NCBI GenBank assembly: GCA_002269645.1
Contig: NIVC01000555.1
Location: 244,482 to 308,481 of the forward strand
Direction of reading: 5' to 3'
Length of the DNA stretch: 64,000 nucleotides
DNA from: Macrostomum lignano
Taxonomy: Eukaryota
The position numbers and the translations under genes are program-made. Below are positions 1 to 64,000 of this stretch, piece after piece (position 1 is the first letter of the stretch; every line of letters begins with the position of its first letter). A model generated the notes under the pieces. The model was not told the origin of the DNA. It did not search any database and was given only the letters and a program-made list of their open reading frames with translations.

Positions 1-3000
1 CGGAGCCGTGGTCGGTTGCAGCGGCGGACAGCGCCCGGCCGGTTGGCAGCCACACCCGAATTGTGCAATCGTCGCTGGCTGTGACCAACATGCCGTGGTG
101 CTGGGGATTCCACGCTACAGAGTTCACGATGCCCGAGTGACCCGACAGTCTGTAGGGAGGTGGTCAGGGCGGAGTTTGACACATTGTTCCTTAGTAGGTC
201 ATTGTGACCCCCAAGTCCTACAGTAGGTCACTGTGACTTCCAATTCCTACAGTAGGTCACTGTGACCCCCAATTCCTACAGTAGGTCACTGTAACTTCCA
301 ATTCATACAGTAGGTCACTGTGACACCCGATTCCTATAGTAGGTACCCCAGCACACACAAAGACACCCAGTTACCCCAGCACATTCTGGTCACAAAGACA
401 CCCAGTTACCCCAGCACATTCTGGTCACAAAGACACCCAGTTACCCCAGCACATTCTGGTCACAAAGACACCCAGTTACCCCAGCACATTCTGGTCACAA
501 AGACACCCAGTTACCCCAGCACATTCTGGTCACAAAGACACCCAGTTACCCTAGCACATTCTGGTCACAAAAACACCCAGTTACCCCAGCACACACAAAG
601 ACTAGTTCAGACACCCCTCCCTCACCTGTCAGGCTGGGAGTCGGCCCCTCCAATACGCCAAACATGGGCGCAATTGTCCTGCGATCCGGAGGCCAAAAAG
701 TTGCCAGTCAGCCCGCCGAAGCAGGCGTGCAGACAGTAGCCGCCTTGACTGATTCCAGGGCCTGCCAGCCGCTGCAGACAGACCCGATGCTGAAGATCCC
801 ACAGCCGCAGGCCAGAGTTGACAACATTCAATGCGGCAACCTGCTGGTCTCTGGACAGGCACATGGCTATAATACTGCCGTCCTCCTGCAGCAGGGTCTC
901 GTCTTGCATTGTGTCGAACCTGTACTGCCGAACTCGACCGAAAGAATCTGCAGCCAAGGCGGCCGTGTTGCCGTCGCGGTCCGTTCTGGTTGCCAGGGCA
1001 ACTACGCGAATGAAATCCCAGGATTTGCGGTAGCCGGCCTCCAGGCTGAACAGGTAGAACTGGCCTGCAGGTTGGGGGGCGATGGTGCGTTTAGGGGTGA
1101 TTGTCAAGGGTTTTTAGGAGCGATTTTCATGTGTTTATTGGAGATTCTCAGGAGTGTTTAAGGGAGATTCTCAAGGGTGCTTAAGGGAGATTCTCAGGAG
1201 TGTTTAAGGGAGATTCTCAAGGGTGTTTAAGGGAGATTCTCAGGGAGTGTTTAAGGGAGATTCTGAAGGGTGTTTATTGGAGATTCTCAAGGCTGTTCAG
1301 GGGAGATTCTCAAAGGTGTCTAAGGAAGATTCTCAAGGCTGTTTAAGGAAGATTCTTAGGGTGTTTGAGGGAGATTCTCAGGAGTGTTTAAGGGAAATTT
1401 TCAAGGGTGTTCAATGGAGATTCTCAAGGCTGTTCAGGGGAGATTCTCAATGGTGTTTAAGGGAGATTCTCAGGGAGTGTTTAAGGGAGATTCTCAAGGG
1501 TGTTGATTGGAGATTCTCAAGGCTGTTCACGGGAGATTCTCAAAGGTGTTTAAGGGAGATTCTCAGGAGTGTTTAAGGAAGATTCTTAGGGTGTTTAAAG
1601 GAGATTCTCAGGAGTGTTTAAGGGAGATTTTCAAGGGTGTTTAATGGAGATTCTCAAGGCTGTTCAGGGGAGATTCTCAAAGGTGTTTAGGGGAGATTCT
1701 CAAAGGTGTTTAAGGGAGATTCTCAGGAGTGTTTGAGGGAGATGGAGATTCTTAAGGGTGCTTAAGGAAGATTCTCAAAGTTGTTTAACGGAGATTCTCA
1801 GGAGTGCTTAAGGAAGATTCTCAAGGGTATTTAAGAAAGATTCTTAGGGTGTTTGAGGGAGATTCTCGGGAGTGTTTAAGGGCGATTCTCAAGGGTGTTT
1901 AGCGAAGATTCTCAATGGTGTTTAGCGGAGATTCTCAAAGGTGATTAAGGGAGATTCTTAAGGTCTGTTCAGGGGAGATTCTCAACAGCTTACCTCGAAT
2001 GCCCCCGGCAACAAAGTGCACAGAGTCGGGAAACCAAGCCGCAGTGGTCAGCGACTCTTCCGGCGTGCCACCCCGGCTGAATCGCTGCGGCTCCGAGCTG
2101 CCGCCGCTCAGCACAGAGGCGCTGTTAACAACCACGCTAGCGCCGTTAGGATGAGACTCCGCCAACAGGGAATGATGATGAGCAGCAGCTGACGCAGGCG
2201 GCAGCAGCGGCGGCGGAGAGACGCACCAGACAAGCACGTCGGAGCTGTCCTCGGCAGCGCAGCACAGCAACAGTCGGCTGTCTGGAGACCAAGCTAGACA
2301 GGCCACTCCGCCTCGCTCCTCGCCGATGTGGTACCGCCTAGCAACGCTCAGTCGGAGCGTCAGGTCGTCAACGCGCCAGATGAACACGGCGCCGTCTTTG
2401 CAGCCGGTGGCCAGGTGGCGGCCGTCTGGGGAGAATTGACAGCAGCGCACCTCGTCCTGGTGCTGGTCGGCCACCTGACGAGATCGGGCATGGTGGGCAG
2501 GGTTATAGATCAGTTTATGGAGATTTAATCACAGGTAGTCTGAGGTGTCTGAGGACAGGTAGCCCCCCAGTCTCTGAGGTGTCTGAGGACAGGTAGCCTT
2601 TGGTCTCTGAGGTGTCGGTGGACAGGTAGCCCCCAGTCTCTGAGGTGTCTGAGGACAGGTAGCCTTTAGTCTCTGAGGTGTCTGAGGACAGGTAGCCTTT
2701 AGTCTCTGAGGTGTCTGAGGACAGGTAGCCTTTAGTCTCTGAGGTGTTTGAGGACAGGTAGCCTTTAGTCTCTGAGGTGTTTGAGGACAGGTAGCCCCCA
2801 GTCTCTGAGGTGTCTGAGGACAGGTAGCCCCCAGTCTCTGAGGTGTCTGAGGACAGGTAGCCCCAGTTTCTGTGGACAGGTAGCCCCAGTCTCTGTGGAC
2901 AGGTAGCCCAATCTCAGAAGTCAGTCTGCAATGATATCCGCTCTCTCACCTGGCCACATCTGGCTGGAAACTCGGCGCTGTCCCTGCTGCAGGCGTGATC

Positions 3001-9547: not shown

Positions 9548-10738
9548 ATGGCCTCGCCATACTCAGTCGAGGTGCTCAGAGCTGGCTACAGCTCAGACGA
9601 GCGCAGCGCATGCACCATCACCCTGGTTAGCGGAGCCAACCAGCACATCCTCATCGACACTGGCGGTCCCTGGGAGGCCGACCTGCTAACCAACTTGCTG
9701 ACTGCTCGCGGCCTCTCAGCCTCCAGCATCAGCATGGTGATCTGCACGCACGGTCACGTGGATCACATCGGCAATCTGGCCATGTTCTCAACCGGCTGTC
9801 CTAACAAACTCATGATTGTCGGCTGCGATATTGCTCAATCTCCTGATCGATTTCTGGCCCACGATTTTCGGTCCGGCATCGCCTACGAGTTGGACGAGTT
9901 TGTCCGGATTGTACACACGCCGGGACACTCGTCCGACGATGTCACCGTGCTGGTTAGGACCAGTTCGGGGCCGCTGTTTGAGGCCATGAAGGCTGAGGGA
10001 GAGTCCGAGATAACGGTACGAAATTATAGGTGTTTATTTTTTCAATCTGTTTTGATCGCCTAGTCATGTAGTTCATATAAACGCGGGCTTTTCTTTACAT
10101 ATTTCTGCTATCTGTCATGGCTACTTCTAATAAGTTGCCTTGTTTTCTGAACAATTCCGTTCTGACTCCTTATAGCCACCTGAGTGATTCCCCTCTATAG
10201 CCACCTGAGCGATTCCCCTCTGACTCATTATAGCCACCTGAGCGATTCCCCTCTGACTCCTTATAGCCACCTCTGAAATTTCCCTCTGACTTCTTATAGC
10301 CACCTGAGCGATTCCCTCTGACTCATTATAGCCACCTGAGCGATTCCCCTCTGACTCCTTATAGCCACCTAAGCGATTCCCCTCTATAGCCACCTGAGCG
10401 ATTCCCCTCTGACTCATTTATAGCCACCTGAGCGATTCCCCTCTGATTCCTTATAGCCACCTGAGCAATTCTCCTCTGACTCCTTACAGCCACCTGAGCA
10501 ATTCCCCTTCGCAACGCCATTCCCGCAGGTGGCCGTGGCGGGCGACCTGTTCGAATCCGAGGCCGACTTCAATGCCGACGGCGACGCCCAGTGGATGAGC
10601 CGGTCAGCCAACTCGGAGGTGCAGACCGACCAGCGCAAGCGAATTCTGCACAAGTCGCAGGCGGTGGTGCCCGGCCATGGGCCCGCGTTCCGCGTCAAGC
10701 CGGAATTCCAACGCTCGGTTAGTGTGGAGGAAATGTGA
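9548..10738 (+). CDS. MBLAC1: Metallo-beta-lactamase domain-containing protein 1-like, 2 exons (9548-10015, 10529-10738)
   Basis: MBL-fold motifs ILIDTG, THGHVDHIGN (HxHxDH), HTPGHS, AGDLF and VVPGHG. Donor ACG|GTACG and acceptor CCCGCAG|GTG are both phase 0. Confidence 0.88.
10170..10510. repeat. 33-bp minisatellite in the MBLAC1 intron
   Basis: GCCACCTGAGCGATTCCCCTCTGACTCCTTATA in tandem, with shortened units. Confidence 0.95.
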
Positions 10739-10834
10739 CAACCGCTTGCTGGCTTGCTAGGCACTTGAGTTGGCTGAGTCTCCGCGTTTTGTAACTTGGC
10801 AGTTTATCACTGTTCGTGTTCCTACACTCAGCAC

Positions 10835-11285
10835 CTCTGACTCTGCCTTTCTCTCTGCTTCTCCCTCTGTCTCCTCTCTGTCTCCCTCTCTGTCTCCTCT
10901 CTGTCTCCCTCTCTGTCTCCCTCTCTGTCTCCCTCTGTCTCCTCTCTGTCTCCCTCTCTGTCTCCTCTTTGTCTCCCTCTCTGTCTCCCTCTCTGTCTCC
11001 CTCTCTGTCCCCCTCTCTGTCTCCCTCTCTGTCTCCCTCTCTGTCTCCTCTCTGTCTCCCTCTCTGTCTCCCTCTCTGTCTCCCTCTCTGTCCCCCTCTC
11101 TGTCTCCTCTCTGTCTCCCTCTCTGTCCCCCTCTCTGTCTCCCTCTCTGTCTCCCTCTCTGTCTCCCTCTCTGTCTCCTCTCTGTCTCCCTCTCTGTCTC
11201 CCTCTCTGTCTCCCTCTCTGTCTCCTCTCTGTCTCCCTCTCTGTCTCCTCTCTGTCTCCCTCTCTGTCTCCCTCTCTGTTTCTGT
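10835..11285. repeat. CT-rich simple repeat of about 12 bp
   Basis: (TCTCCCTCTCTG)n. The ORFs overlapping it are repeat artefacts. Confidence 0.95.
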
Positions 11286-12672
11286 ATCTTTTTATAAACT
11301 TTTCTGTTTGTCTTGCCATGTCTCTATACTTGTCTATTTTCAGCCACTCCTTATGCAGTCAGTCATTACTTCCTGCTTCCTGGTTCTAATTTATCTATTC
11401 AATGTCTGTCGCAGTATCCCGGTAACAGCACGGCGGTCTTAACGTGTTCTAAATATTATTCAATCACAAGTAGCGCTCCAAAGTATATGTTTAAATCCAA
11501 AGTCTCTTTCATATTAGTATTTATCGTTGCATTCTTTTTGCATAAAAAGAATCCTAAATTCTAGACAGCAAATTCGACACTAGCTACTTGTAACTGTTAG
11601 TAGTTTAAAGTACGTATTTTTCATTTTTTTCGCTGTCATTAGGCATGTTATTTTTCCTATGCACTCATTAGTAGTATATATAGTCTATTCTCATTAAACA
11701 TATTCAGCTATCTCCGTGTTCTACCCTTGGATTTTCAAAGGCTTTATATGAACTGCTTTTCCGTTTACCAACCTATTTGCTATTTCTAATGTTTTTTGCT
11801 TCCAGTATCTAGTGGTAGACTGCCGCTTTCTGTTGGGCGCGATCAGTTTAAGTTGAAGTTAAAATAACAAATAAAAACGAACTACAATCAAAGTTTGCTT
11901 CTATTGCTAGTTTTGAAGCTTGCGTTGTTTTCGTTTAAACGGGGCTATACATTAATTTACTTATATTTTCCGACTGATTGTTCATTTTTAAGCTAGGAAA
12001 ATAGCACAGGTATCAGAATAGCTTGAAATACCAACCAAAAAATTCGCTCGCGAATCTGCTCTTTTCAGTAGTATAATTAGCGTTATTTGTGTTTAAAGTT
12101 TTTGAGTCTGCGATAATTGCCTCCGGCTTTCTACAAGCAAGATCAAGTTAATTTTTTTCTTTTTATCCTATTTTTACCTATTTCAGACTGCTTCAGACTT
12201 GGAATTGTTTAAAAAAGTTTTGTCCGTTTGACTTTGACCTCTCTCCTTATTGCTCTCTTATTGGCTGAGCTAGATTGGGCCTGCCCCTAGGCTGAGTTTC
12301 GTCCGTCTAACTTTAACTTCTCTCCTTACTGCTCTCTTATTGACTGAGCTAGATTGGACCTGCCCCCCCCTTAGGCTGAGTTTCGTCAGTCCTGTGTTGA
12401 CTTGTGTACATCGAGTTGAATGCTTGTTGCTAATTCTTAAAACCAGTAGCTTTTTTCGACACACAGTCACTATTGAAGGATGGCACGCCACGCATACCAT
12501 GGGGCTTCAATCTCTTTCCCACTACCTCAGAGCACTGTGTCAATTTACGGCTACAGTTTATTTTAAAGTTGTCTATTGTAAAAACAGTTCAGAATCATGC
12601 AGCAATTTTTCCTGATAACACAAACTTTTCGAACTTTACTGTATAATTAAGTCAACTCTCGCGAGACTTAAA

Positions 12673-23441: not shown

Positions 23442-26400
23442 TCACTTTTTGTACAGCGCGACGTCCAGCCACAGTCCCAGCGCCTCGACGTCGCGGTCCT
23501 CCGCGCTCATGTCGAACCAGTTCGTCGCCGGCCCGGACTCTCCTCCACCGTCGAGTCGCTGATTTGCCAATGCCCGGTAGCGAGCTCTTGACCGGCTGTC
23601 CACCTGCGAGTGAATGGGGATCGATACTGTATGTCTCACTCACACAGCAGTGAGGCAGAGCTGTCTCACTCTTACAGAGCTACACAAAACTCAGACCTGC
23701 TCACTCAGCTGATTGCGAGAGTCTCACCTGTCCAACCTGAACTACCAGCAGGCGGCGTCTGAACGAGTTCGCAGCGAGGAAGGCTTGGAACTCGCACTGC
23801 AGCTCGGCCTCGTCTCTGAACCAACTGAGCAGGCCGTCGTTGAGCAGCAGCACGAACTGGCGAGTTCGCTTCATCATGAAGCTGTTGATGCGGCCGGCTT
23901 GCGAGGCGCCCTCGAAGTTTTCAGGCCAGCGATCAGCCAGGACCGCGTCGTTGGTACCGAGCCGAACGCCAGGGAGGCGACGAACGATGAGCTCGACGAC
24001 GGTGTTTGAGCTCGAAGCTGGGTCGGCTCGAGACTCGGAGTCAGAGGCGGACTCCAGAGCGGACAGGATGAAGACCTCCGGCATTTTGTCCGAGTGGAAC
24101 GGCGGCCAGTCCCGAATCGTGCCCAGAATGATGCGGCTTCCTATAGGTAAGTAATTATACTAAAAGACACTGACATTGATATTTTTCTGTTCCAACTTAA
24201 TTCGCCAAATGCGAGCATTACTGAAAACAAATTGATAAGCTTAAACTGTATTCTAAGCAAAACTGTAGTTGCGCTTGCTATTCAGGAAGAATTGATTAAT
24301 TCTTACGCATAAAATCCATCGTCTGATCAACGTCGACAACCAGCGGCTGCTCATCAGAAGTTAGATCTACCAGCTCTTTAGGTTCAGCCGCTGTTGAACT
24401 CTCAGTGCCAACGGTTGCCAGCGCCGCAGCTGTGGTAGTCTCTGGAACCACTGACTGATCAAACACGAGAACGGCGGCCGGATCTCGGTTTCGAATGCGC
24501 TCGATGAGTCGGTACTCCCAGTCCACCGATTTGTACACGATGTCGCTCCCTGCGAGGATTTTCTGCAGAGTGTGGAACGCCTCCACGTCCTCAGGTCCGA
24601 GCTGTCTCTGGCGCTGAAGCGACACTCTGCGCGAGCTCAGGCGCAGAAACACAATGTCCTTGAACGGATTCCGACCCACGCTGTCGAGCTCTCGAATCAC
24701 CTGGCACAGAGCCAGGTACTGGGTGTCGAGGAACCTCTCGGTCAGAGCTACCACCACTTTGCCGCTGAACTTGGCTCCCTCAGCTGGACAGTCAAAGTAG
24801 GTGAGCGGACAGGAGCACAGGTCCGAGTAGAGGAAGCTCTCCGGAACGCACAGCTCGAGCTCGTCTCCGCCCGAGGCGCTGCGCACGCAGTTCAGCACGT
24901 CGACCAGACAGTCCTGGTCTCTGTCCGACGCCCACAGCATCGCGTCGTACGGCAGCGAGTCGCGAGATGCCTGATGCTGCAGTCGCCGACTGCTCTGGTA
25001 CTTGAGGAGGATGAGGACTCGAACCACGGCCAGCAGTCGGTGTCGACGGCGGACAGCGAGCATCGCGAGACCGAGCAGCACGAGACCAAATGCTGATGTC
25101 AGAACGATCCGGACGGTCTGCTTTCGCTGCTGTGCTGCCGAGTCCGCTATGAGCTCGCACACTTTGACAAGTCTGCCTTCATCACTCACTAATTGATAGT
25201 CTGTTGAGTTTTTTAGCTTCTTACAGACGACGTTCCACTTGTGATCGTGACTGTTGACCTTACAGGCGTCAATTATGTCTTGGTCGACACTGCAGGTCAT
25301 ACGTTGAAAGTCGGACACAACTTGTGTAGTTTTAGAGACCTGCAGAAGCGTTTGATGCAACTGCAGCCATTCTTTAGTGCAGGAGCATTGCCACGGGTTG
25401 TCACTTAGAGTGATGTCCATTAGACTCGGCAAGCAGTTCTCATCGAAAATCTCAACATCAAGTGTTGTCATGTCGTTGTTGTTTAGTGATATGTTTTGGG
25501 TGTTGTTCGCGAAAGTACATATCGACTCTTTTTTGAAACTCTTGATTCGATTGTGATCCAATTCAATCCGGGCTAGGCGGTGGTCGAAATTAAAGGCCCC
25601 GTTCTCAATGTAAACAATGCCACTGTTGCTCAATTTCAGAAACTCCAGCTGTGCGGAAAAACTCTGAGGCTTCCACTTGAAGGTTCCAGACGATATGTGG
25701 CGAAGACTGTCGACACCGTGGATGTCTGACATGTCAATTTTCTTTACTGGATAGTCGATAACCAACTGTGACAGACTGAGTGATTTGTTTTGACATTGTA
25801 AGTCGAAGAATGTCCAGTCTTCATTGTGATAACAGGAGCATCCTGCCATGCAGTACACCCAGCACTTGGTAGGGTCCGTGCAGTTCTTACTGGGCAGCTT
25901 GTGTTTCTTTTTGCCTTCAAAGTTGCAGAGAAATTGTACAGACTGCTGCTTGGCCTCACGGAGAGAGAGATTTACTTTGCCTCTGTCAGGATCAAAAAAC
26001 GTGCAGTTTGAGTCCATCTCCTCATCCGGAATTCGGGATAATGGTATTCGCTATGTTCGGCCCACGGGGAATTCTCCTCCTCTTCGAATGTCTTCATGTA
26101 GACACTGCCGCAGTCGCAGACTAAATTATTTTGCTGGTTCTTTGCGTACAGCACCACTCTGGAGCCCAGTGTCGTTCTCTTCGTCATAGTCATGCTGTCG
26201 TAGTAGATATGAAGCAATTGGTTGTGGCTGAGGTCAATGAAGTCCAGCATCTTAAGATTATTGAATGCACCTGTTTCAATCGCAGTAATGCAATTATTGG
26301 CCAGCTTAACTCTGTGCAGTTGAGAAGATCTTGGCAAGGAGTCATTCTCGACGTTTCCTAATTGATTGTGCTGAATACTGATCTCCTCCAGTCGCTCTAG

Positions 26401-29400
26401 GCTTGACAGTAAGAAGTACATTAATTTATTATAGTCTAAGTTCAAAACAACAAGGCTGCCTTTTAAGCGGGACTTTGCGAACGCTTCCGGGTTTATGGTG
26501 GTAATCTGGTTGCCTTGGAGATGGAGCTCCGCCAATTGGACCTGCGAATGCCAAACATGTAGGAAGGCACCTTTTTAAATACTACGAGTACAGTGTGTGC
26601 AAGTAAGGCTAGCAGGTTAATTTTTAACAAACGAATATGAAGGATCCCACACCATTTTAGTTCTACTTTGTCTTTGATAACCTTTCGTTTTGATTCTCGC
26701 TCTCCCGCCCCGCCTCTTACTTAGGGGCTGAGTAAGGGCTGAGCAAGGCAGTAACGTGGCCGACTCTCGAGCTTAAGTTCCGAGCGCGGCCACATTAATG
26801 TCTACTAAGCCTGCTCCGTGGGCCTCAGTGTAAAGTTTGTCAGCTCCACCCTTTCCCCTCGCGCCCTCCTCTCAACTCTCCCCCTCGCCCCATGCCGGGG
26901 TTTTTTTAACCCCGTATTTTCAGGCTTTGCCTTGGCACTGCGTGCAATGGTGCAATTGCTCTGATTTTCATTCTTTAGCTGTTTCAACAACCATGGAAAT
27001 TGCACGCGCACTACTAACAGCCAGACAGCTCAGAGCGGAGCTGGCCAAGCGCGGTCTACCAAACACAGGCTGCAAACAACAGCTCTACTAACGGCTATGC
27101 CACCACTTGTAGTCTGAAAGTCCCACAGCCGACTCTGATGGCTCCGGCGCGACTCTTGATGCAGGAATCATCGCCGACTTGTCAACAGGTGGGCACAAGG
27201 AACGAGGTGGGCACGGGGCGCTGCTGGCGAGGTTCTGCAGATGGAGGTCGAAGAGCTGGAAATCAAGGCGCTGACGCGGCGCCGTGCTCAACTGCAGCGG
27301 CAGTTCAACGAGAACCAGACTGCTGCCTCCCTACTTAAAGGTGAGCCCACTGATTTTTCTTCTGGTGTGCATGAGGCCTATTTATCTTGCGCTGGTATAT
27401 AGAGCGCGGTCAGTCGGCCAGAAAGAGCAGCCGGGCCTACCTGATCCGAGACTTTGTCAAGCCCAATGCAAATCAGTCAAGCGAGAGCCTGACCGCTTGT
27501 ATGAGAACGGCAACTTGTGATTCAAGAAGCAGCTGCGAAACCCAAGCAAGATTTCCACCGGCCAATGAATCTCCGGTAATGCTCTAATCCTACAGCACCA
27601 GATTGAGGACGGCTCGCTCATCTACACGAATGTCGACGGGTCTCTACCAGCGAGCTGAGAGGCTACCCAGTAGATCTGCGAACTTCTTGACGCCAACTAC
27701 AGCCCATATATTGCGGTGGGAGTTTGATAAAGTTTACAGGAAGCTACTGGCCGAGCCGGACTGACTGCCGGCTGTCAGTGGTTCAGCTGCAGGTACCCGC
27801 ATGTCTGCAAGCTGCCCGGCTGCGGTTAAGCCACACCCACCCACCTGCATCGTCAAAGCAGCAATGTGGCGGAAGGATAAAAAACTAAAAGCAATTGCCT
27901 ATGCCTTCCTGTCGCTGCTGTGTGGATTTGCGGGTTAACTTTTGTTTAACGCACGAACTATCAAAATAACGGAGCTCGAAAGCTCCAGGGTTAACGCCGT
28001 TTGACTCTCGTTCCACGATCGCTGGTTCGATTCCGTGTCGTTCAACGATCGCTGGTTCGATTCCGTGTCGTTCAACGATCGCTGGTTCGATTCCGTGCCC
28101 GACCACATTCATTTGAGGATCATGGCCCTTCAAATGGCCAAGGGTTGTCATGTGATTCACACCCTTGATCGCCAATCTCCAAGGCACAGAGAGTGCACAT
28201 GCCTGACGATTATAAAGTCAGGACCACTGTGCATGTACATTCTGTCTCGATAGTCATCAATAGTCAGCGGAATGGGCAGAACCGTTAGTTGTGGGACGAT
28301 ATCGCTGAAGGTGTTGCGCCAGATTGCTTAAACCCTAATAAAAAATTAACTAAGTAACTAAATTAGTTACTCACGTTATACCAGGGCTGAATTTCGCCGA
28401 TCAGTTCGATTCTATTGTAGGACAAGTCCAAAACCTTCAGAGTCTGCGCAGAGGCCCTAAACCAGTAGCAGTGTCTGTTCTTGCCCGTTCCGTTTTGTAC
28501 CGGTGGACGCCAGCAGATCCAGTCGCGGTACAAGCCGGAGATGCGGTTGTGGCTCAGGTTGACAGTCTGGAGGTTCCCAAGCAGGCTAAGCGAATAGGGT
28601 ATTTCATTGAGTTTATTGAAGCTGAGGTCCAAGTAACTCAGTCCGACGCCCCAAGGAACCTGTTTGCTCAAGTTCTGCTTATTTTCGCTCTCGTTAAACT
28701 CCTGATGACCAAACACCAACGAGAAGTCAATGTTATCGTTGTCCATCATGTCGTACAGGTATGTTACTTTGTTTAGTCGTCCCGAAGCATTGTAGCTGTA
28801 CTTCAGATTCTCGAAAGCCTTTTTAACAAGTTTGTTATGGCTATTCAACCGAGTTCTGTTTTTGACCAGCTGTGCTAAAAGCTCGTCTAATGCATTGAGC
28901 GTCACTTGCAGTGCGTCGCTGCCGAACTCGGAAATGTTGCAGTGAGCCATTGTCAGACTGTCGATATTTCTCAGAGCCAAGAGGTTTTGCACTGACACCC
29001 AGGTGATTGGCGAGTACCGAATCTGAATGCTGCGCAGATGCGTGCACCGATGCGTGATGTACACGGGAAGGAAATAAAGGTCTACCCTGTCCAAGTGAAG
29101 GTACGTCAGCTTGCAGTCGGACTTGTTGAAGTCCTTCGGGTAGGCGACCTCTACAGTGTAGTAGCCGCCTACTCCAGGCTTCTCGGGTATTCCGAACTGC
29201 GCCAGTTTCATTTCCTCTCGCAGCTCGACATGCTCCAACTCCAGCTGAGTCGCGTCAACGTTGATGTTGATTGGACAACCGATTATCAAGACTTCGGCTG
29301 GCGGATACACCTGAAACCCATCGAATAATTTCAGATTCATAGTTCAGAATTATTAAAAGCAGCTGGGCACATTTATTTCAGTTGAAGATGTTACCTTTGA

Positions 29401-29968
29401 CATAAGTGATTTTCTCATTGGTAAGCGCTTCCAGAATAATTTTGATGTGTCTTAATTGTCTTCACTGATGCGTAACAATGGTAGCAATAGAGAGATATGA
29501 AAGACTTGTACAGCGGCCCTGACTTTACATTCTATGCCTCATGGGGTTGGTCTTCATGGACCGCGATGAGGACCGCAGTGATTTAAAAGTACTCACCTTA
29601 ATAGTCATCTTATTTTTGTAGTGCGCTAGGCTCAGCTGCCGAAGATCCACTGTGGCGCAGTTGTGACAACCGCTGCAGTCAATCGTGAGATTCAAAACAA
29701 CTCTGTAAAGAATTAATGAGCACGGAACTCCCGATTCGGGTGGCACTTCGAACCGGTGAGAGATTTTGCAGTAAAAGTCATATCCCGACGGGTGGCCGGA
29801 GTCGCAGAGGCACTGGCTGTTGTTGTCATTAAAGACAACAAAACTGCTTTGGATTTGATCTTCTGGGTAATTAACTTTACCGCGGTGTCTGGAGCTCTGA
29901 GATGCAGTAAAACTTGACATCATTGCAAATAAGCAGACGCAGCTCAGTAACGCCAAGGCACTACCCAT
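23442..29968 (-). CDS. Toll-like receptor copy 1 (multi-cysteine-cluster type), predicted SP-CysRich-LRR-LRRCT-LRRNT-LRR-LRRCT-TM-TIR-TIR, 5 exons, one frameshift at about 26035
   Basis: Exons 29968-29597, 29310-28375, 26541-24307, 24140-23728 and 23603-23442, all GT-AG and phase-compatible. Signal peptide MGSALALLSCVCLF; LRRs (LSYLDLSFNKLNEIP, LQTVNLSHNRISGL, LDFIDLSHNQL); internal LVCDC and CxxxCxC clusters; NPWQCSC; TM IVLTSAFGLVLLGLAMLAV; TIR1 PYDAMLWAS…ELCVP…KVVVALTERFL; TIR2 PEVFILS…RQFVLLLNDGLLSW…RRLLVV. A GGG run at 26035-26037 is GGGG in copy 2. Confidence 0.85.
26993..27780 (+). mobile_element. Decayed SAP-domain gag-like retroelement fragment in TLR copy 1 intron 2
   Basis: LTARQLRAELAKRGLPNTGCKQQLY*RL fits the SAP consensus. 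Downstream RFPPANESPVML*SYSTRL resembles the gag RxQxxxESxxxYxxRL motif. It contains stops and frameshifts and is absent from the same intron of copy 2 (443 bp versus 1,833 bp). Confidence 0.55.
27990..28345 (+). mobile_element. tRNA-derived SINE with a triplicated B-box
   Basis: GGTTCGATTCC at 28024, 28054 and 28084 (30-bp tandem unit). The core GGCACAGAGAG…ACATGCCTGA…AAAGTCAGG..C.CTGT is shared with about 37034-37085 and about 48226-48280. A-rich tail. Confidence 0.65.
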
Positions 29969-31189
29969 TTCTGTTTTGGTGTATGTGCAAAATGAACTCT
30001 ATACTGCGTCAATTGCGTAGAAATTTATCCAGCTAAAAATGTGGAACTTCGCCCGTACAATTGAAATTTATTTAGTCGCTTTGCCTCTGCAGTTGTTTAT
30101 TTTATATTTTGAAGTCTCAGCTGCAGTGGGGGGGAACTTGTTGCTGTCAGATTTTCAGATAACGCCCCTCAGCAGAAGCCAAGGAACCCAAGTCACTACA
30201 GCGGAAAAATCGAAAAACGTATTTGGACGGCCTTGAAAGTTTTCAGTCACTTTGCAACATTCAAATTATAACTAACCCAATATCTTCATTTAGATGAAGT
30301 TTCATAGGCTGCTCCTAAACGATAAGCTAAATGCATGTAAACTCTACGAGAGTTGGAAAATAAAATCCTGGAAAATAAAAAGTGACGCATTAAAAGGTCA
30401 GAAACAATTGCTTTTTGTTTAAGTTTTTAATGTCGATCTTCGACATTCTTAAAAATTGTGCAGTCTTAAATCAGAGACACCAAAGAATCAATTTATTCAT
30501 CAAACATCATCGGCCACTTCTTTTGGCGAAATGTAAGAATCTTTAAAATGTATTAACTCATTGCTCTATGTATTCTTCAATTCATTGTTAAACTGTCCTA
30601 TGTATAAAAAATTTTAGGTAAAATCAGAACCTCAAAATCAGACATAGCCACGGGCATATTGTACTGCTCTGCGCACACAAGCTCGAGTGGTCGATAATGC
30701 GATGTTAATAAAAAATGTTTTCGATAATCAGCAGTACTGAACTGATATAATAATACATAAATTTATTCTTTAGCATGTACAGAGTCGTATATTCCTTGTC
30801 AACGAAACGCGATTGGGGCACTCCTAAGTATATAAATACGTCCTTCTTCATTAGAGCTCAGGCCTCAAACCAGATCGCAGCACATCGATCGTAAGTCGAA
30901 AGTAGAAATGGCGTTGAAAGCCTAAAAAGCAACTTTCTAAAAGTCTCTCTCTAAATTTTAACATTTACAAAATTATACAAAACTACGAGTAACTACAAAT
31001 TATTGATCTTGTACCGGTACATGCACTCTCTTGCAATTTGATAGAACCTTAAAAATTGGGAAATCATTGAATGGGTAGCTATGACCTTACAGCTTATACG
31101 ACAATAAGGATTTCTTCTTTCTTGAAAAAAATTGTTCACTGCTAGTTTTTTAACGTGAATAGAGACAATCAACACAATACTTGACTCCG

Positions 31190-34100
31190 TCACTTCCTGT
31201 ACAGCACTCCGTCCAGCCAAAGCCCCAGCGCCTCGACGTCGCAGACCTCCGCGCTCATGTCGAACCAATTCGTCGCCGGCCCGGACTCTCCGCCGTCCAG
31301 TCGCTGATTCGCCAACGCCCGGTAGCGAGCTCTCGACCGGCTGTCCACCTGCAGGCGAAAGACGATTGATTTATCTCATTCATACAGATCAGTGAGGCAA
31401 AGCTACTCAAAACTCACACCTGCTCACTTAGCTGATTGCGAGAGTCTCACCTGTCCAACCTGAACTACCAGCAGGCGGCGTCTGAACGAGTTCGCAGCGA
31501 GGAAGGCTTGGAACTCGCACTGCAGCTCAGCCTCGTCTCTGAACCAACTGAGCAGGCCGTTGTTGAGCAGCAGCACTAACTGGCGAGTTCGCTTCATCAT
31601 GAAGCTGTTGATGCGGCCGGCTGGCGAGGCGCCCTCGAAGTTGTCGGGCCAGCGAGCAGCCAGGACCGCGTCGTTGGTACCGAGCCGAACGCCTGAGAGG
31701 CGACAAGCTATAAGCTCGACGACGGTGTTTGAGCTCGAAGCTGAGTTGGCTCGGAACTCGGAGTCAGAGGCGGACTCGGGGGCGGACAGGATGAAGACCT
31801 CCGGCACTTTGTCCGAGTGGAACGGCGGCCAGTCACTGATCGTGCCCATACCGCGATTTTCTGAAGTAATTAATTGAGCCACGGAATAGCGTTTTCAAAG
31901 TTCATAATTAAAAAAGACGCTAGTTCGTCATTGTCTTTATTGACTTCCGAAAATAGTTCGATTTGGTGTTCAGAACTGCGCTCCTACGAGCGTGTATTCA
32001 TCCTGTGGGTCTATCTCGTTTTACTGCAACTGGATTTCACAGCATAATGTCGTTATACCACTACACGAGATGGCCTGTCCAATCTGTTGGATACCTAGTC
32101 TGTTTCTGGGCTCTCCCCTCGGCCTGCTGCGGCGTAGACGCATTGGCTGCTGCCACGTGGAGAGTCGCCTTAGCATGCTTGGCTACGTGGACCTTGACGA
32201 CCATGCTGGAGCGACAGCTGGACTCGGCGCACTAAGGGCTGCTTCGCACGTGGCGTGCAGACAATGAGGCCCTGTACTAAAGTGTTACGCTGCAACATCC
32301 GTCCACCATATTGTGCCGGTTTTGACCTTAACTGGCGGGCCACGTGATCCGGGCCGAGAGCTGCTGCTCATCTTGCAGGGCCTTTCAGGCGGGCGTAAAT
32401 ATCACCCGTCAACACTCGGAACTGCCTGCTGTCTGACACAGCAGTGCCCGCTCGCTCGCGCTGCGGCACGCCACCCGACACTCCCTAACCGTCTGAATCA
32501 TTTTCAAGTTCGCGTCCTTTGTTTTCGTATAGCTACATGATATTTTATGCAAGAAAAATATATTTAACAACATTTAGCAGCCAAATTTTTCGTCAGTATT
32601 GTAGACATCTCGAAACATAGTAGACTACTACAAGTAGCAAGATAAAATTACGAATACAAATTTTGAAACAGCATGCGTCACTCTATTTTCAGCAATATCC
32701 AGTAATATCACAAAAACGGCGAGTGATCATTCTATAGTTTGAAAAACCGGTTCGCAAAATCTATTTTTAGAATTTCAAAATATAGTAAATGTTAACCTGA
32801 ATACGACTGTAGTGACTGGCTGCTAACTGGCCATTCAGCAGCATTCACTAGCTTTCCTAAGAGCTCTGTGATCCGCTGCACAGCAGCTCAGTCCACCTGA
32901 TCTAGAAAGAGGTTACCCTGTGCTGGGCCGAAGTGTTTACTGCCCGATGACTCATCGCCCGAGCAGGCGCGAGCAGCCACATACAATGTCTTCCCATTCG
33001 CGCTGAGGAGGCATAGCAGGATGACTCATAATCTGCACGGAGTTTAATGGCTGCCTAGAGAGAGTAAACAGGATGAATCATCCGCCCAATTTCTACTTTT
33101 AGCACAGAATAAGCACGTGACTGTGCACGCAAGTTGTGCGTGGCCGCTGACCTTGAGTCACGCCACTGCTGCGTGGCAGGGTTACCTCATTTGGAAGTTG
33201 GCCTTGAGTCACGCATCTCCGGCATGACTCCGAAGACAAATAAGGAAGTTTCACGCGCTCACTGCATGAAAGTCACGTGACTTTTGGGGGTCCGCTCGGC
33301 TATAAATACGGAGCATCTCTGGGAGCCAGTTTTGCCCAGGCGTCCTCACTCGTTCGCGTCCGTCCGGCGACCGGAGCTGCATCTCTCCTCCCTCATTTCA
33401 GGATTTTCAGGTTTTTCAGGTTCGAGCAGCAATTTTAGGAACGATCAACCGTCGAGACATTTTCAGATTTGCCTGGCTCCGTGCGTTATTTTATTTTCAC
33501 GTTACAGATAGACAACTCTGCCGACGCGTCGAATCCGCAAACCAAGGTGACAGCAACCCTACCAAGTTTAAGGCTAACGTTTTAAAATCTTTTCAGGCAA
33601 ATCGATAGGTAGTACAACGGTACTATCTAGCAGCTTCCGGATGAGCGAGTTCAATTTTAGGTTCATCGTACAGAACTCGGGAAGGAGCGTAACACGACCA
33701 AGTCTCATCCTTTTCTATTCAAAAACCCACCTGTCAACTGATAAAATTCCTTTCTTGACCTCATAAAAAAACCGGTCTGGGCTCAAGGTCGACTTCAATT
33801 GTGTATATATACGAGCGAAAAATACGAGCTGAAATCTCAGACTCGGAGCGACCTCAAGAGATCTTGGGCTTTGCTAGAGCAGCCAAATGAGGCTACATCT
33901 CCAAGGGAGACAAATACCAATTGGTAAGCCTTTGTCAAAGTCTTTGTTACTTGTCAAAGTAGATTGAAGTATTTGATTATTGAGAGCTGTGTTATTACCG
34001 GCCGTTACTGATCAGTTGATTTTTATTGAGTTATTGGATTTGAGGCCTCCCTATTCCTACGGGATTGGATAGGATCTACTTACCGATTCCGATACTCTTA

Positions 34101-47295: not shown

Positions 47296-48079
47296 ACGCT
47301 AACGCAGGTTGAGATCATATATTTAGTTACCAAATTATTGAATTTCGTCGAAATTTCACCACTTCGCTACTTTACTACTCCAAAATTGGAGGCACAGCTT
47401 TTCCTCCAGAAAATAATAGCGTCCACTTTGCTCTTCAGCCCAAATAAGTTTCCCGTGAAGTTCTAATAGAGTAGAAAATTGCTTTGCAAATTGCTTTGAC
47501 AATCTCCAGGTTGATGGAGAGAGAGGGAGTGGAAATCAAAGGGCCGCAGCCAAGAAGCTTTGAGGTTTCCTAAACGGTCTCTTTTGTCTGCTCGGTTTCC
47601 CCCGTTGCTCAACTTTCCGAGTCTCAACTCTGCCGCTTGTCAGTCTGCCTGAGTCCGATCTCAAAGCTCATGCAGCACTGCACGATCAGTTACCTTTTCA
47701 ACCATATATATAAATACGACACATTTTGGCCGCTGTGACTAGGAAACAGTTATATTGTTAATCGATTACGTAACACAATAGGTAAGACGCGCATAAAAGG
47801 AATCGCGGCTGCTCACGCGAGGCGATCGGGGCCGATTGCTGCGAGAAAGGAGATGAGGGAAAGAGAAACATGAGGCAGCCGTTTTATGGCACGCATGGGA
47901 GCCCGGGGCAGCTCAGGTAGCTCCGGGCCAGACGAGTGTCGTCTTCCCTTTATTATTGTTGCCTTCCTTCATGCCCAAGTCTTTTGTAGCCAACCCCAAC
48001 TCGACCTCGATTAAAAAGGGGAACCGAGCAGTGGGGGGTCTCCGTTGCCCCCCCCAACCTCCCCACAGTCACCCAAAGC

Positions 48080-60344: not shown

Positions 60345-63300
60345 ATGCTTAACTCGATTAGCCTTGTCGCCCTGCTGTGGGCCATCAGCTGCGCACCCTT
60401 CATCTTGGCCGCGAGTCGCGAGGTGAACTTCGAATGCGACGAAGAGACTGATCTGAATGCGGGAGTTGGTAACTTATGGCGATCCTTAGGCAGCCCAAGC
60501 CGCCTCTCAGACTTCAGACTCATGCCGGAGTCGCCCTACTTCAAAGTTGACAAGGAAAGCAACGTGCGCATCAGAGGGCGAATCGACCGCGAGGATCCGG
60601 TCGCTTGTCCCGACGCAGGCGAGACTCGACCCTGCGTGATCGAACTCAACGCTTTCTCAGACAACGACCGGACTGTGGTGCGCATCACCATTAAGGATAT
60701 AAACGACAATGCGCCGGTGTTCAAAGAGCCACAGAAAGAATTGATCGTCGAGGAGGGCGATACAAATTTTCAGTGCCCGCTGGATGCGGCAACCGATGCG
60801 GACATTGGTGACAATGGAATGCTCATTAAAGGTCACTACTTCCTGATTGGCGATGGGGGGCAATTTTCACTAAAGCAGAGACATCAGCAAGGCGCGCTGT
60901 ACCTCGTGCTGGCTGAAGGAGCCCAGGCTCTGGACTATGAGACGGCACAGCAGCACTTGCTAAACCTGACCGCTTGCGACGGTGGTTTAAATCCGAACTG
61001 TACCAGCCAGCGACTCATAGTCCGGGTACGCGATCGCAATGATAACGCGCCGATTGTAACGCCAGACGCGTGGCCGGCAGTGCCGGACACGCTGCCCGTT
61101 GGCGGTCGGGTGGGTAAAGTGACCGCCACGGACGCGGACAGTGGCGAAAATGGCCGCCTGACATACAGCATCACTGGCGATAGAAAGTCCATGGAAGCAT
61201 TCGTTATTAACGAAACAACTGGCGAAGTCCGATTGCACCGCCGACTAAATGCGCGAAGCCATCTTCAGTACGTCATTCAGGTGCTAGTCTCAGATAATGG
61301 GGCTCCCAGCCGCCAAACAGTGACTAGCTTCCCTCTGAGCGTCCGAGACGCCAACGATCACGCACCGAACATTTCAATCCTTCCGATGGTCCAGCGATTG
61401 CAGCAGAAAGGTACACCTGAAGCAACCAAGAACTCTGGAATGGTTTTAGTCCGGGAACGCGAATACAGGCGCCTCACTAGCTTTCATTCAGGTGACCGAC
61501 GAAGATCTAGAAGACAATGGTCGCACAACTTGTCAGCTTGGTGAGCCAGGAGCGGAGCTGTTTCGGCTTACGTCGTCTGGAGAGAAAGATTACATGCTTT
61601 ACAGCCTGCAGTCCCTGGACTACGAGGCACAGACAAGGACTAGCGTTCGAATCGATTGCCGCGATGCCGGGTCTCCGCCGCAGTCCGCAAGCAAAGTCGT
61701 GCAAATCAAAGTTGAGAATGTAAATGAGTTTTCCCGGAGTTTCAATCTTCATATTACAACGCCACGGTTGAAGAGTCGAACGGTCAACATGATGACAACG
61801 GTGTAGGACGGCCAGTGCTCACCATTGAAGCCATTGATAGGGACCGAGACGACCCGCTGACTTTTCAAATTTTAGACGACGGAGCCACTTCCCACGGTCG
61901 CTTCTTCGAGGCCGTAGTAGAGATACATCGAGCTTCTCAAATCTACAGGGGGTCAGTCGTACAACAGGTGTAATAGAGTGAAGTCGTCAATAGATCGAGA
62001 CTCGCTTCGATTGCCAAACGATCGTTTGGTATTTGTCATTCAAGTTAAGGACACACCTGACTCCGAAGGTACACAGCACACCGCTAGCGCAAGCGTCACT
62101 GTTCGTGTATTAGACGTAAACGACAATGCTCCTGAAATTCTTCAGCCCCGACTGTACAAGGTACGCGAAAATGCACCGGTTGACACTCCTGTGCTCGCAG
62201 CATCAAATGGCGACAGTCGGATCCGATTCACTGATCCCGACGCTCCCGGACCAAATTCCCGAGCTGAATTTCAACTGCTAGATGTGCGAGCCAAAATTCT
62301 TGGCTTGGAAGGTGGAGACCGTTATCTGCGGCCGAGGGAGCGGCCGTTTCTTGTGACCAAAGACGGTCAGATTAGGACAACAGTCTCGTTGGATCGAGAA
62401 GTTCATTCGGCCTATCTAATATCTGTATCTGTTGCCAATACGGAGGCCCAGCCACGATTGAGCACTACGGCTGAGCTCACAGTGATTGTAGAGGACGAGA
62501 ACGACAGTCCACCGGTTTGGTCATTTCCGAGGGAGTCCAACCTCTTTGTGAACATCTCCACTGCGCATCGAATCAATGATGACGTCACCTGGGTGCAGGC
62601 GACAGACTCAGACGAATCCAGCAACATCACTTACCAGCTCATTGATGCAGTTGGCGAACCGCTCACCTGGGTACCGTCGCATGCTTCGTTTTTTCTGGCC
62701 ATCGACCCAAAGTCTGGCGTGATTCGCTTAGTTGCCCGACCAACTCCTGGCCGCCACGTTGTGACTGTCCGTGCTGTGGACGCTGACCGGCCGCAGATGT
62801 TTGTAGACACTCAGCTGATCATAAACGTTCTGCGCTACGCTGGCGACGGTGGACACCTGCGCGAGGCTCAGGTTAACCTGTCAATCATTGTTGCCATGGT
62901 GGCGGCAACTTGCCTGGTCAGCCTCTGCCTGGTTTCCGCCATTGTCTGCGTCCGTCAACGGCGTCATCAGCGATCTGCAGGCGCCGCGTCTTCTGCCGGT
63001 GGCTCCTCTTGCGGCAACGGCGGCGGCCTTGGCGTCGAAAAGGCGTTATCGCCACCGACGCTGCCGCTGCCAGCATCGTGCCAATTCGGCCTCGATGACC
63101 AGCTGGACGACTGTGGTGCGCCTGAGCCGCTGTTGTTCAGCGGCGGCGGTGACATCGGAGGAGGCGGCTGCAGCAGCGGCTGCGGTACACCAACAAGGCA
63201 CCACCTGCACATGACCACCTTCTGCCAGAGCGACTCACAAGTGCTGCCAATGATGCAGTCGCACCATCCGCTGTACTATCCGCAGCATCAGCACCTGCAG

Positions 63301-63389
63301 CAGCAATCCAAGCAGCCGTTCCGCTTCCACATCAGCAGCAGGCCATGTACCAGCAGCCAAACATTCAGCTGCTTCTGGCTGGAAATGAG
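60345..63389 (+). CDS. Protocadherin (7 cadherin repeats, delta-1-like), single large exon interrupted by about 5 small deletions; likely continues beyond the donor at 63390
   Basis: Signal peptide; seven EC repeats ending DINDNAP, DRNDNAP, DANDHAP, NVNEFSP, DVNDNAP and DENDSPP, with DRE/LDYE motifs; TM NLSIIVAMVAATCLVSLCLVSAIVCV followed by RQRR. Frame repairs are needed near 61457, 61730, 61870-61955, 61975 and 63320. Candidate donor GAG|GTGAAA. Confidence 0.85.
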
Positions 63390-64000
63390 GTGAAATTTCT
63401 TCTTATTGACCAGCGACCAATCATAGAACCTTTGCCCTTCGTGTGTAGCTTTAACCAGTCTTGACAATTACAACGTTTTACCCTTACTTTTGAGCACTTA
63501 AAGCTTCTATATAGTGACTCCATTCAATTTTGACACTCAATCACAGGACACACCGAAACGAAGCATATCATTGTAGAGCTTAATGTTGATGTCCGGGATG
63601 TGAAACAGAGTTAGGGGAGGGTTGCGCTGGACGATTGTGCAGAGAAATCGTTGCATTTAGTCGTCCTCATTGAATGCTTCACACATGGCTTTGCTTTCTT
63701 CGCAGCAAAATCGTAGTTTCGTCAAGCAACGTCATTAGGCGTCAAAATGTGTGTTGAATAGGGTGAAATGGTGCAGTAGGTATAGCTACTAACTCTCACA
63801 GAATGATTGACATTGAGAAGGGATGAATTGTGACTCATAGATTAGAGAGATGAAAGAATTGGTTTTAGCTTCACTCTCGCGCTCAAAATAATTAGAAGGC
63901 CAGTTTTTTCTAGCACCTTGTCTCTTGAAAATAGCTGTAGCGCTAGTAGATGAAGCACAAAATTGTGAGATTTAACGCTCGGTTTCAAATAAGGATCTTC

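Follow-up and report, generated by a model that had tools for sequence, protein, structure and literature searches.

A 64,000-nucleotide stretch of the genome of the flatworm Macrostomum lignano (contig NIVC01000555.1; hereafter the window) carries two head-to-tail paralogues on its minus strand, copy B at 39823-31190 and copy A at 29968-23442, which we delimited from the listing of open reading frames (ORFs) and by direct reading of the sequence, with translations made by script. We read them as two tandem Toll-type receptor genes that are cis-spliced to a second, unrelated TIR-like domain, and we give this reading, taken as a whole, an even chance of being right. The receptor ORF would then not end at the stop codon nearby; a GTAAG donor in phase 1 would be cis-spliced to two more coding exons, exon 4 (137 aa) and a last exon (52 or 53 aa). 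The roughly 190 residues added in this way (~1175-1364 of the 1364-aa product), which we call domain 2, would make up a second alpha/beta domain of TIR-like type, unrelated to the cytoplasmic domain in the usual Toll position (domain 1).

A predicted cis-splice joins the receptor frame to two downstream exons

The first-pass annotation of this DNA had placed a phase-1 donor just before the stop of each receptor ORF and a phase-1 acceptor at the head of a further exon, and both are present as described. The donors, TTTATGC|GTAAGA at 24307/24306 in copy A and TTTATGA|GTAAGT at 34578/34577 in copy B, cut after the first base of a codon, and the acceptors, TAG|GA at 24141/24140 in copy A and CAG|AA at 31861/31860 in copy B, restore the frame of the downstream ORF. 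If the contig record runs in the orientation of the window, the junctions would lie at 279059>276341 (copy B) and 268788>268621 (copy A) of the record. The intron that would be removed from the mRNA lies on the minus strand and measures 166 nt in copy A (24141-24306, GTAAGA...CTATAG) and 2717 nt in copy B (31861-34577, GTAAGT...TTCAG), the mean intron of M. lignano being 1.1-1.4 kb long. Insertion of a transposable element as the cause of the 2.7-kb intron of copy B has no support: there are no repeats inside it and none shared with the rest of the window. The second intron, which joins exon 4 to the last exon (23727-23604 in copy A, 31450-31349 in copy B), is in phase 0 in both copies, running from CAG|GTGAGA to GCAG|GTG, and the last exon with VDSRSRARYRALANQRL...NWFDMSAE...LGLWLD is found in both, again as first proposed. 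We also observed that the first ~50 nt of this second intron (23604-23727; 31349-31450) are near-identical between the copies, the remainder being unalignable and interrupted by indels; the near-identical start could mark the border of a conversion tract or an intronic element that is conserved.

The comparison between the two copies sets the phase-1 donor apart from its surroundings. In either copy no other GT[AG]AG occurs in the final ~400 nt of exon 3, and the donor fits the cis-donor motif of M. lignano, GT[G/A]AG (PMC8629364). Identity between the copies drops across it, from 34 of the last 45 exon bases to 16 of the first 45 intron bases, and five of these 16 are the GTAAG itself. The 40 codons that precede the donor form a linker with a synonymous divergence (dS) of 1.15 and 52% amino acid identity between the copies; despite this divergence, the peptide PL(V/I)VDVDxTxDFM and the reading frame are kept up to the donor in both. 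If the intron is retained, the frame stops after three codons in copy A (RKN*) and after 16 codons in copy B (SKSVLNFLEAMSVLRN*), and these two read-through tails are unrelated and unconserved.

Exon 4 has no conserved start codon. A methionine occurs in copy A only at DK-M-PEVF and in copy B only at RG-M-GT, neither is present in the M. lignano paralogue P0018 (described below), and DWPPFHSDK, which lies upstream of both ATGs, is conserved as protein. The spliced leader (SL) of M. lignano ends in ATG (PMC8629364); joined to exon 4, this ATG is out of frame with domain 2 and would open a long out-of-frame ORF. Given the ATG pattern, the conserved DWPPFHSDK and the frame of the SL ATG, exon 4 appears to act as an internal coding exon. 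The in-frame cis-splice is, in our view, the most economical reading of these comparative data, and the receptor is probably fused with exons 4 and 5 by cis-splicing.

It had also been proposed, from at least eight synonymous differences between the copies in the last exon, that purifying selection acts there in the spliced frame. Our count for that exon is higher, with about ten synonymous against five non-synonymous differences (10/15, binomial p=7e-4), and the excess extends to exons 4 and 5 taken together, in which 20 of the 39 changes are synonymous where 25% would be expected (p=3e-4). In exon 4 the proposed frame is the only stop-free sense frame, and it has the lowest ratio of non-synonymous to synonymous divergence (dN/dS), tied with one antisense frame. 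We regard it as a solid prediction that exons 4 and 5 are coding and constrained.

The two genes encode Toll-type receptors

Copy B is organized in five exons across which the frame is intact, and it translates to exactly 1364 aa, the length that had been estimated for it. Exon 1 (39823-39452) contains the ATG, the signal peptide and a cysteine-rich N-terminal region and ends at a phase-0 donor, CAG|GTGATT. Exon 2 (38174-37239) starts after a TGTAG| acceptor, encodes the N-terminal region of leucine-rich repeats (LRRs) and ends at another phase-0 donor, AAC|GTGAGT. Exon 3 (36795-34578) is the receptor exon proper, with LRRs, an internal LRRCT/LRRNT-like cysteine cluster, a membrane-proximal LRRCT, a transmembrane segment (TM; ~35376-35311), cytoplasmic domain 1 (~35238-34699) and the divergent linker, which ends in the conserved PLIVDVDRTWDFM. 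Exon 4 (31860-31451; DWPPFHSDK-VPEVFILS ... LLVVQVGQ) carries most of the TIR-like domain 2 up to a phase-0 donor, CAG|GTGAGA. The coding part of exon 5 (31348-31190; VDSRSRARYRALANQ...NWFDMS...LGLWLDGVLYRK) consists of 52 codons (31348-31193) and a TGA at 31192-31190, and would contribute the last strand and helix of domain 2.

The five exons of copy A correspond to these. Exon 1 (29968-29597; ATG and signal peptide) has only 41% amino acid identity to copy B and exon 2 (29310-28375) has 74%; exon 3 (26541-24307) encodes the LRRs, TM, domain 1 and linker, exon 4 (24140-23728) domain 2, and the coding part of exon 5 (23603-23442) comprises 53 codons (23603-23445) and a TGA at 23444-23442. The length of about 1372 aa that had been given for copy A is reached only if a 1-nt deletion in exon 3 is ignored. 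At ~26038 (window 26036-26040) copy A reads CCC where copy B has CCCC (36294-36297), and this deletion in a run of C breaks the frame in the LRR ectodomain, so that the assembled frame ends after 625 aa, at a stop after ...EYHYPEFRMRRWTQTARFLILTEAK. The ORF downstream of the deletion, 26017-24296, is intact. A mini-intron as the cause of the frameshift was excluded, as copy B is continuous there. The assembly, Mlig_3_7 (GCA_002269645.1), derives from PacBio data assembled with Canu and polished with Pilon, and copy A is either a young pseudogene or bears a homopolymer error left over in this PacBio/Pilon assembly.

That these are Toll-type receptor genes in tandem, as the first-pass annotation had it, is borne out by the signal peptide, the LRRs, the cysteine clusters, the TM and the placing of the cytoplasmic domain where Tolls have their TIR. 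On direct reading the N-terminal MKFTVFLLCCAAVAWTYA is hydrophobic, consistent with a signal peptide. The LRRs of the 1364-aa model are matched by Pfam LRR_8 (8.3e-30), LRR_4 (6.6e-17), LRR_1 and LRR_5; the Pfam LRRNT and LRRCT models give no match on it. In BLASTP alignments with the arthropod Tolls P0003 and P0005, the protein is colinear through the LRRs, the internal LRRCT/LRRNT cluster, the membrane-proximal LRRCT and the TM to betaA-betaC of the TIR, with YDAMLWAS aligned to FDAFVSYS at betaA and GKVVVALTERFLD to KRTILILSENFIK at betaC. The cysteine clusters LVCDCGSVYMK, CWVYCMAGCSCYHNEDW and, next to the membrane, NPWQCSCTKEWL align with the matching clusters of these two Tolls, as does the TM, IVVIVLTSAFGLVLLGLAMLAV, which is followed by RRRHR (BLASTP and direct reading). 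More than one LRRCT-type cysteine cluster and an internal LRRCT-LRRNT junction are present, a feature of P-type or multiple-cysteine-cluster (mcc) Tolls. After the M. lignano protein P0001, the next matches of the receptor exon are arthropod Tolls with PF01582 (E 1e-18 to 1e-12). From the sequence we consider it solid that both genes belong to the P-type/mcc Toll-type receptors: behind a signal peptide come the LRR ectodomain, a single TM and, at the place of the TIR of a Toll, a cytoplasmic domain.

For the two cytoplasmic domains we built an in-house TIR profile of 15 sequences. Ten of them are reference TIRs, each of which Pfam recognises as such (1e-13 to 1e-44); the other five were cut from the Toll matches P0002, P0003, P0005, P0014 and P0016, for all of which PF01582 stands in the precomputed Pfam list. 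Against this set, in what are hypothesis-driven tests, domain 1 gave an hhalign P of 0.054 and a Smith-Waterman family-sum z of 3.7 (1/500 shuffles). Because of its positional homology, these weak statistics and the UniProt name of P0001, we interpret domain 1 as a very divergent TIR. It would have diverged beyond the reach of TIR profiles, a view that rests on weak but register-consistent signals.

Domain 2 may have a TIR fold

The same kind of hypothesis-driven comparison was made for domain 2. Its score against the in-house TIR profile corresponds to p=0.005 (11/2000 shuffles), and hhalign (P=0.027) aligns 83 columns from alphaA to betaD, placing the WFRDE of domain 2 on the WCxxE of alphaC with both its Trp and its Glu. 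The Smith-Waterman family-sum z is 2.6 (10/500 shuffles), the best partner being betaC-betaD of the MyD88 TIR (score 48). MAFFT adds domain 2 colinearly to the TIR alignment, from EVFILS at betaA to LWLDGVL at box 3, and the pattern so obtained comprises EVFILS as betaA, LVLLLNNGLLSWFRDE as betaC/alphaC, RLLVVQV as betaD, NWFDMS with a Trp at the betaE position and the box-3-like LWLDGVL. The order of predicted secondary-structure elements is alternating beta/alpha, at low confidence. A TIR fold of domain 2 is plausible on these alignments. The two cytoplasmic domains had been described as highly dissimilar to each other, and this is the case: their best BLASTP match has E=2.4 and hhalign gives P=0.14. 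Internal duplication as the origin of domain 2 was rejected on this same lack of detected similarity between domains 1 and 2.

Paralogues and mosaic divergence

Two public M. lignano proteins are related to these genes; there is no encoding contig on record for either of them. P0001 (UniRef A0A1I8HBV3, 1068 aa), the best match of the receptor exon, is named 'TIR domain-containing protein' in UniProt and is 56% identical to the receptor exon overall and ~97% identical in the TM and domain 1. Its C-terminus, ...VT-SK-YNCQSFL*, has the appearance of a read-through product: the S-K dipeptide is the one expected if a phase-1 A|GTAAGT donor such as that of copy B were read through. P0018 (UniRef A0A1I8HAL1, 2297 aa) is an ab initio model that is chimeric with a C2H2 zinc-finger gene. 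It contains a sense copy of domain 2 and its tail (residues 904-1073) behind unrelated sequence, with the same junction, VGQ|LDSRSR, and its residues 1915-2296 are the antisense translation of a third locus in which domain 1, linker, domain 2 and tail follow one another in the same order. The model thus points to two or more additional copies of the domain-2 module in the genome, of which one may lie outside a receptor; since P0018 is chimeric, we take the sense copy only as a hint that the module exists outside receptors.

Divergence between copies A and B is mosaic along the gene. From the first exon to the last, dS takes the values 1.58 (exon 1), 0.66 (exon 2), 0.125 (ectodomain part of exon 3), 0.08 (domain 1), 1.15 (linker), 0.12 (exon 4) and 0.32 (exon 5). 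The two copies share 98% identity in domain 1, where ten of the 13 changes are synonymous (p=9e-5), and the old, diverged exons 1 and 2 (dS 0.66-1.6) have a dN/dS of 0.25-0.29. The mosaic dS, together with the ~97-98% identity of the TM and domain 1 block even in P0001, whose ectodomain is 56% identical, points to gene conversion or concerted evolution of that block.

Alternative readings of the locus

A number of results weigh against the reading in which each receptor is spliced to a second TIR-like domain. No transcript, expressed sequence tag or annotated protein was found across the junction, and nine candidate products (fused, unfused and stand-alone, from both copies) are absent from a collection of 15 billion proteins by exact look-up. 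The annotation of GCA_002269645.1 has no gene call over copy A (contig NIVC01000555.1, of which positions 252169-274106 are identical to window 7688-29625), and the gap of 155 nt from the stop to the acceptor in this copy is typical of M. lignano operon spacers. P0001, the only public paralogue model, ends after domain 1 (...ALIVDVEQPVTSKYNCQSFL*), and exon 4 by itself has a dN/dS of 0.5 (p=0.05). For domain 1, no TIR match at E<=10 comes from Pfam (TIR, TIR_2 and all other models), PADLOC, NCBIfam or phmmer against PDB, and its shuffle test against the in-house TIR hidden Markov model reached only p=0.13. For domain 2, searches of Pfam (TIR and TIR_2 among its models), PADLOC, NCBIfam and PDB sequences find no TIR at E<=10 either. 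The names TIR1 and TIR2 of the first-pass annotation are interpretation, neither domain being recognised by any profile library, and the p-values from our own, hypothesis-driven tests are modest (~0.002-0.13 for domain 1, ~0.005-0.03 for domain 2). An exhaustive phmmer search with exon 4 of 1.84 billion representatives gave a single match, the M. lignano protein P0018. Single-sequence AlphaFold2 models were unusable, both for domain 1 (predicted local distance difference test score, pLDDT, 38.7; modelled without alignment) and for exon 4 only (34.8); Foldseek against PDB gave noise for both, with aldolases and ribosomal proteins as meaningless top matches, and for exon 4 nothing at E<=0.001. 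Queried with the spliced tail (433 aa) or with exon 4, a word-seeded protein search also returned nothing; it missed P0001 and P0018 too, which are 89-97% identical and part of that collection, and so has no bearing on relatives within the species.

Exons 4 and 5 might instead be a separate downstream gene for a small cytosolic TIR-like or adaptor-like protein, either operonic and SL trans-spliced at the exon-4 acceptor or with a start of its own, the receptor ending at the stop just past GTAAG. In M. lignano, 30-39% of genes are trans-spliced, operons have a modal spacer of ~100 bp and the trans-acceptor motif is [T/C]TNCAG (PMC8629364, PMC5730564), and to this the 155-nt spacer of copy A and the acceptor CTTCAG of copy B conform. 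In each copy, exon 4 has its first ATG in frame, the public model P0001 terminates after domain 1, and P0018 carries its domain-2 copy in a non-receptor context. These in-frame ATGs, however, do not occupy the same position in A and B, and P0018 has neither, with the protein upstream of them conserved, and an ATG supplied by the SL would open the long out-of-frame ORF. Both copies have a consensus cis donor upstream, which favours cis- over trans-splicing (PMC8629364), and the spacer of copy B is 2.67 kb, not the short one (<1 kb) free of an upstream cis donor that marks an operon. A separate gene would also leave the phase compatibility and the sharp conservation boundary at GTAAG unexplained, and we consider it rather unlikely, although no alternative is taken more seriously here.

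If the exons are spliced on, the ~190 residues could still be a lineage-specific domain that is not a TIR, its likeness being that of any alternating beta/alpha hydrophobic pattern. The missing profile and PDB sequence matches at E<=10 would be expected of such a domain, as would the lack of a homologue beyond M. lignano among the 1.84 billion representatives, the AlphaFold2 pLDDT of 35 and an hhalign probability of just 1.8%; p-values of 0.005-0.03 would fail in a library-wide search. In three tests, however, domain 2 aligns with the TIR profile in a single colinear register from betaA to box 3, with the Trp and Glu of alphaC and the Trp of box 3 aligned. Moreover, domain 1, in the exact position of a Toll TIR and named TIR by UniProt, scores no stronger than domain 2 on two profile tests, and failure of profiles is therefore to be expected in this lineage. 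For these reasons we judge a non-TIR domain to be unlikely. We regard it as very unlikely that the loci are decaying, unexpressed relics, with the pair or at least copy A pseudogenes and the constraint a reflection of recent duplication and gene conversion. The frameshift of copy A, the transcriptome-based annotation that calls no gene over it, the absence of the candidate products from public protein collections and the gene conversion evident from the mosaic of dS values (from 0.08 up to 1.6) would agree with decay. Against it stand the intact 1364-codon frame of copy B over five exons, the significant synonymous excess in domain 1 (10/13, p=9e-5) and in exons 4+5 (p=3e-4), and the dN/dS of 0.25-0.29 that the diverged exons 1-2 (dS 0.66-1.6) have kept; the lone frameshift itself sits in a C run of a PacBio/Pilon assembly.

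Neighbourhood of the receptor genes

Other features of the window were noted in passing. Two annotated genes without Pfam domains lie at 17688-19625 (+) and 15843-16472 (-); their products have in common a W(K/R)RWxGYG motif with a hydrophobic segment after it, and the 645-aa product of the 17688-19622 ORF contains eight tandem 21-aa repeats (ASQPVETALAVSAADNAAVAL) between coiled-coil-like flanks. An ORF fragment at 13777-14238 (+) resembles, by eye, the C-terminal region of a piggyBac-type transposase (...GGVDRLDAALQPYSAGRRTYSWHQKLGFHILLQLVRNAW...). Long CT/GT-rich microsatellite arrays, for instance of the (CTGT)n type, at 10770-11450, 43650-44920, 45190-45760 and 46850-47330 give LSVC or DRQT repeats in ORFs and cause strong local GC/AT skew, as is typical of the repeat-rich M. 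lignano genome. The neighbouring genes at 60345-63393 (+), 622-2474 (-) and 9548-10738 (+) comprise cadherin-repeat ORFs (DxNDNAP, protocadherin-like, with a TM), WD40-like exons and an annotated gene of metallo-beta-lactamase fold (Pfam Lactamase_B in the record).

Implications and comparison with known systems

A Toll-like receptor (TLR) has been defined by at least one LRR, a TM and a TIR, and a survey that filters first with a HMMER TIR profile counted zero TLRs in M. lignano and in all the flatworms examined, from which an early loss in Platyhelminthes was inferred (Orus-Alcalde et al. 2021, PMC8609888). Because its filter starts from that profile, copies A and B would be missed by the survey, and the inferred loss of TLRs in flatworms may be partly a detection artefact of searches that begin with TIR-HMMER. 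At the least, Macrostomum keeps the full ectodomain and TM architecture of a Toll together with a cytoplasmic domain that is positionally homologous to TIR and invisible to profiles. One could go further and suppose that M. lignano retains a small, concertedly evolving family of P-type Tolls whose TIR has drifted past profiles, and that a second, heterotypic TIR-like module, also present in a non-receptor gene, was captured by exon acquisition; we find this broader scenario possible but doubtful. If it were true, a receptor would be fused to its own adaptor or effector, and Toll signalling would persist cryptically at the base of the flatworms. Should the exons prove to be joined and the module to be a TIR, M. 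lignano would provide the first twin-TIR receptor from outside the molluscs. No earlier one would have had TIR-type domains unrelated to each other, and it would amount to a natural receptor-adaptor fusion. If the exons are a separate operonic gene, what remains is a divergent Toll-like receptor beside a small orphan protein, and the correction to the TLR census still stands. M. lignano is amenable to transgenesis and RNA interference, so the idea is directly testable.

Such a receptor might work in three steps. Driven by ligand, the ectodomains would pair and so juxtapose the membrane-proximal TIR-like domains, the distal TIR-like module, tethered to the receptor, would act as a built-in adaptor or scaffold, and downstream TIR-TIR assembly would take place on that distal module. 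This would parallel the twin-TIR Tolls of bivalves, but with heterotypic domains.

Twin-TIR Tolls in bivalves, which the first-pass annotation had mentioned, are real as far as they are cited in PMC5845394: Hyriopsis cumingii HcToll-2 (Ren et al. 2014) and two Crassostrea gigas loci (Gerdol et al. 2017). Judged from that citing paper, they share with the M. lignano genes an LRR ectodomain, a TM and two tandem TIR-type cytoplasmic domains on one polypeptide (in our case putative ones, joined by a predicted splice), and both lineages are spiralian. The bivalve receptors, as cited there, have two recognisable TIRs, whereas Pfam recognises neither of the domains here, they are mutually unrelated and the second is encoded on a separate exon pair with a predicted splice. 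The phmmer search of exon 4 against the 1.84 billion representatives detected no homology of domain 2 to any bivalve TIR. The best non-flatworm matches are arthropod P-type/mcc Tolls (of the kind of Drosophila Toll; P0003 from Petrolisthes, P0005 and P0014, the Venturia 'protein toll-like'), with which the receptors are colinear from the LRRs to the first half of the TIR. They differ from these in their identity of only 23-25%, in keeping YDAMLWAS but having no RDxxPG BB-loop, and in the extra C-terminal module.

With the TIR adaptors and effectors MyD88, SARM1 and TIRAP, domain 2 has in common its best pairwise match, to betaC-betaD of MyD88, and a copy outside a receptor context in P0018; both would be expected of an adaptor-type module captured by a receptor. 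Unlike MyD88, SARM1 and TIRAP, it is accompanied by no death, ARM or SAM domain, and the similarity is at the edge of noise (Smith-Waterman score 48). The 'LRR-only TLR-like' proteins of PMC8609888 are the class into which a HMMER-TIR-first survey would put our genes; what sets them apart from it is that their cytoplasmic domain is a positional homologue of the Toll TIR and that UniProt automatically named a paralogue 'TIR domain-containing protein'. SL-resolved operon pairs of M. lignano (PMC8629364, PMC5730564) resemble this locus in having coding units on the same strand and, for copy A, a short spacer that ends in an acceptor, but differ in that here there is a consensus cis donor upstream in a compatible phase, no conserved start codon and an SL ATG that is out of frame. 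Set beside these systems, the architecture itself is already known from bivalves; what would be new in M. lignano is the lineage, the extreme divergence of both cytoplasmic domains and their pairing as a heterotypic couple.

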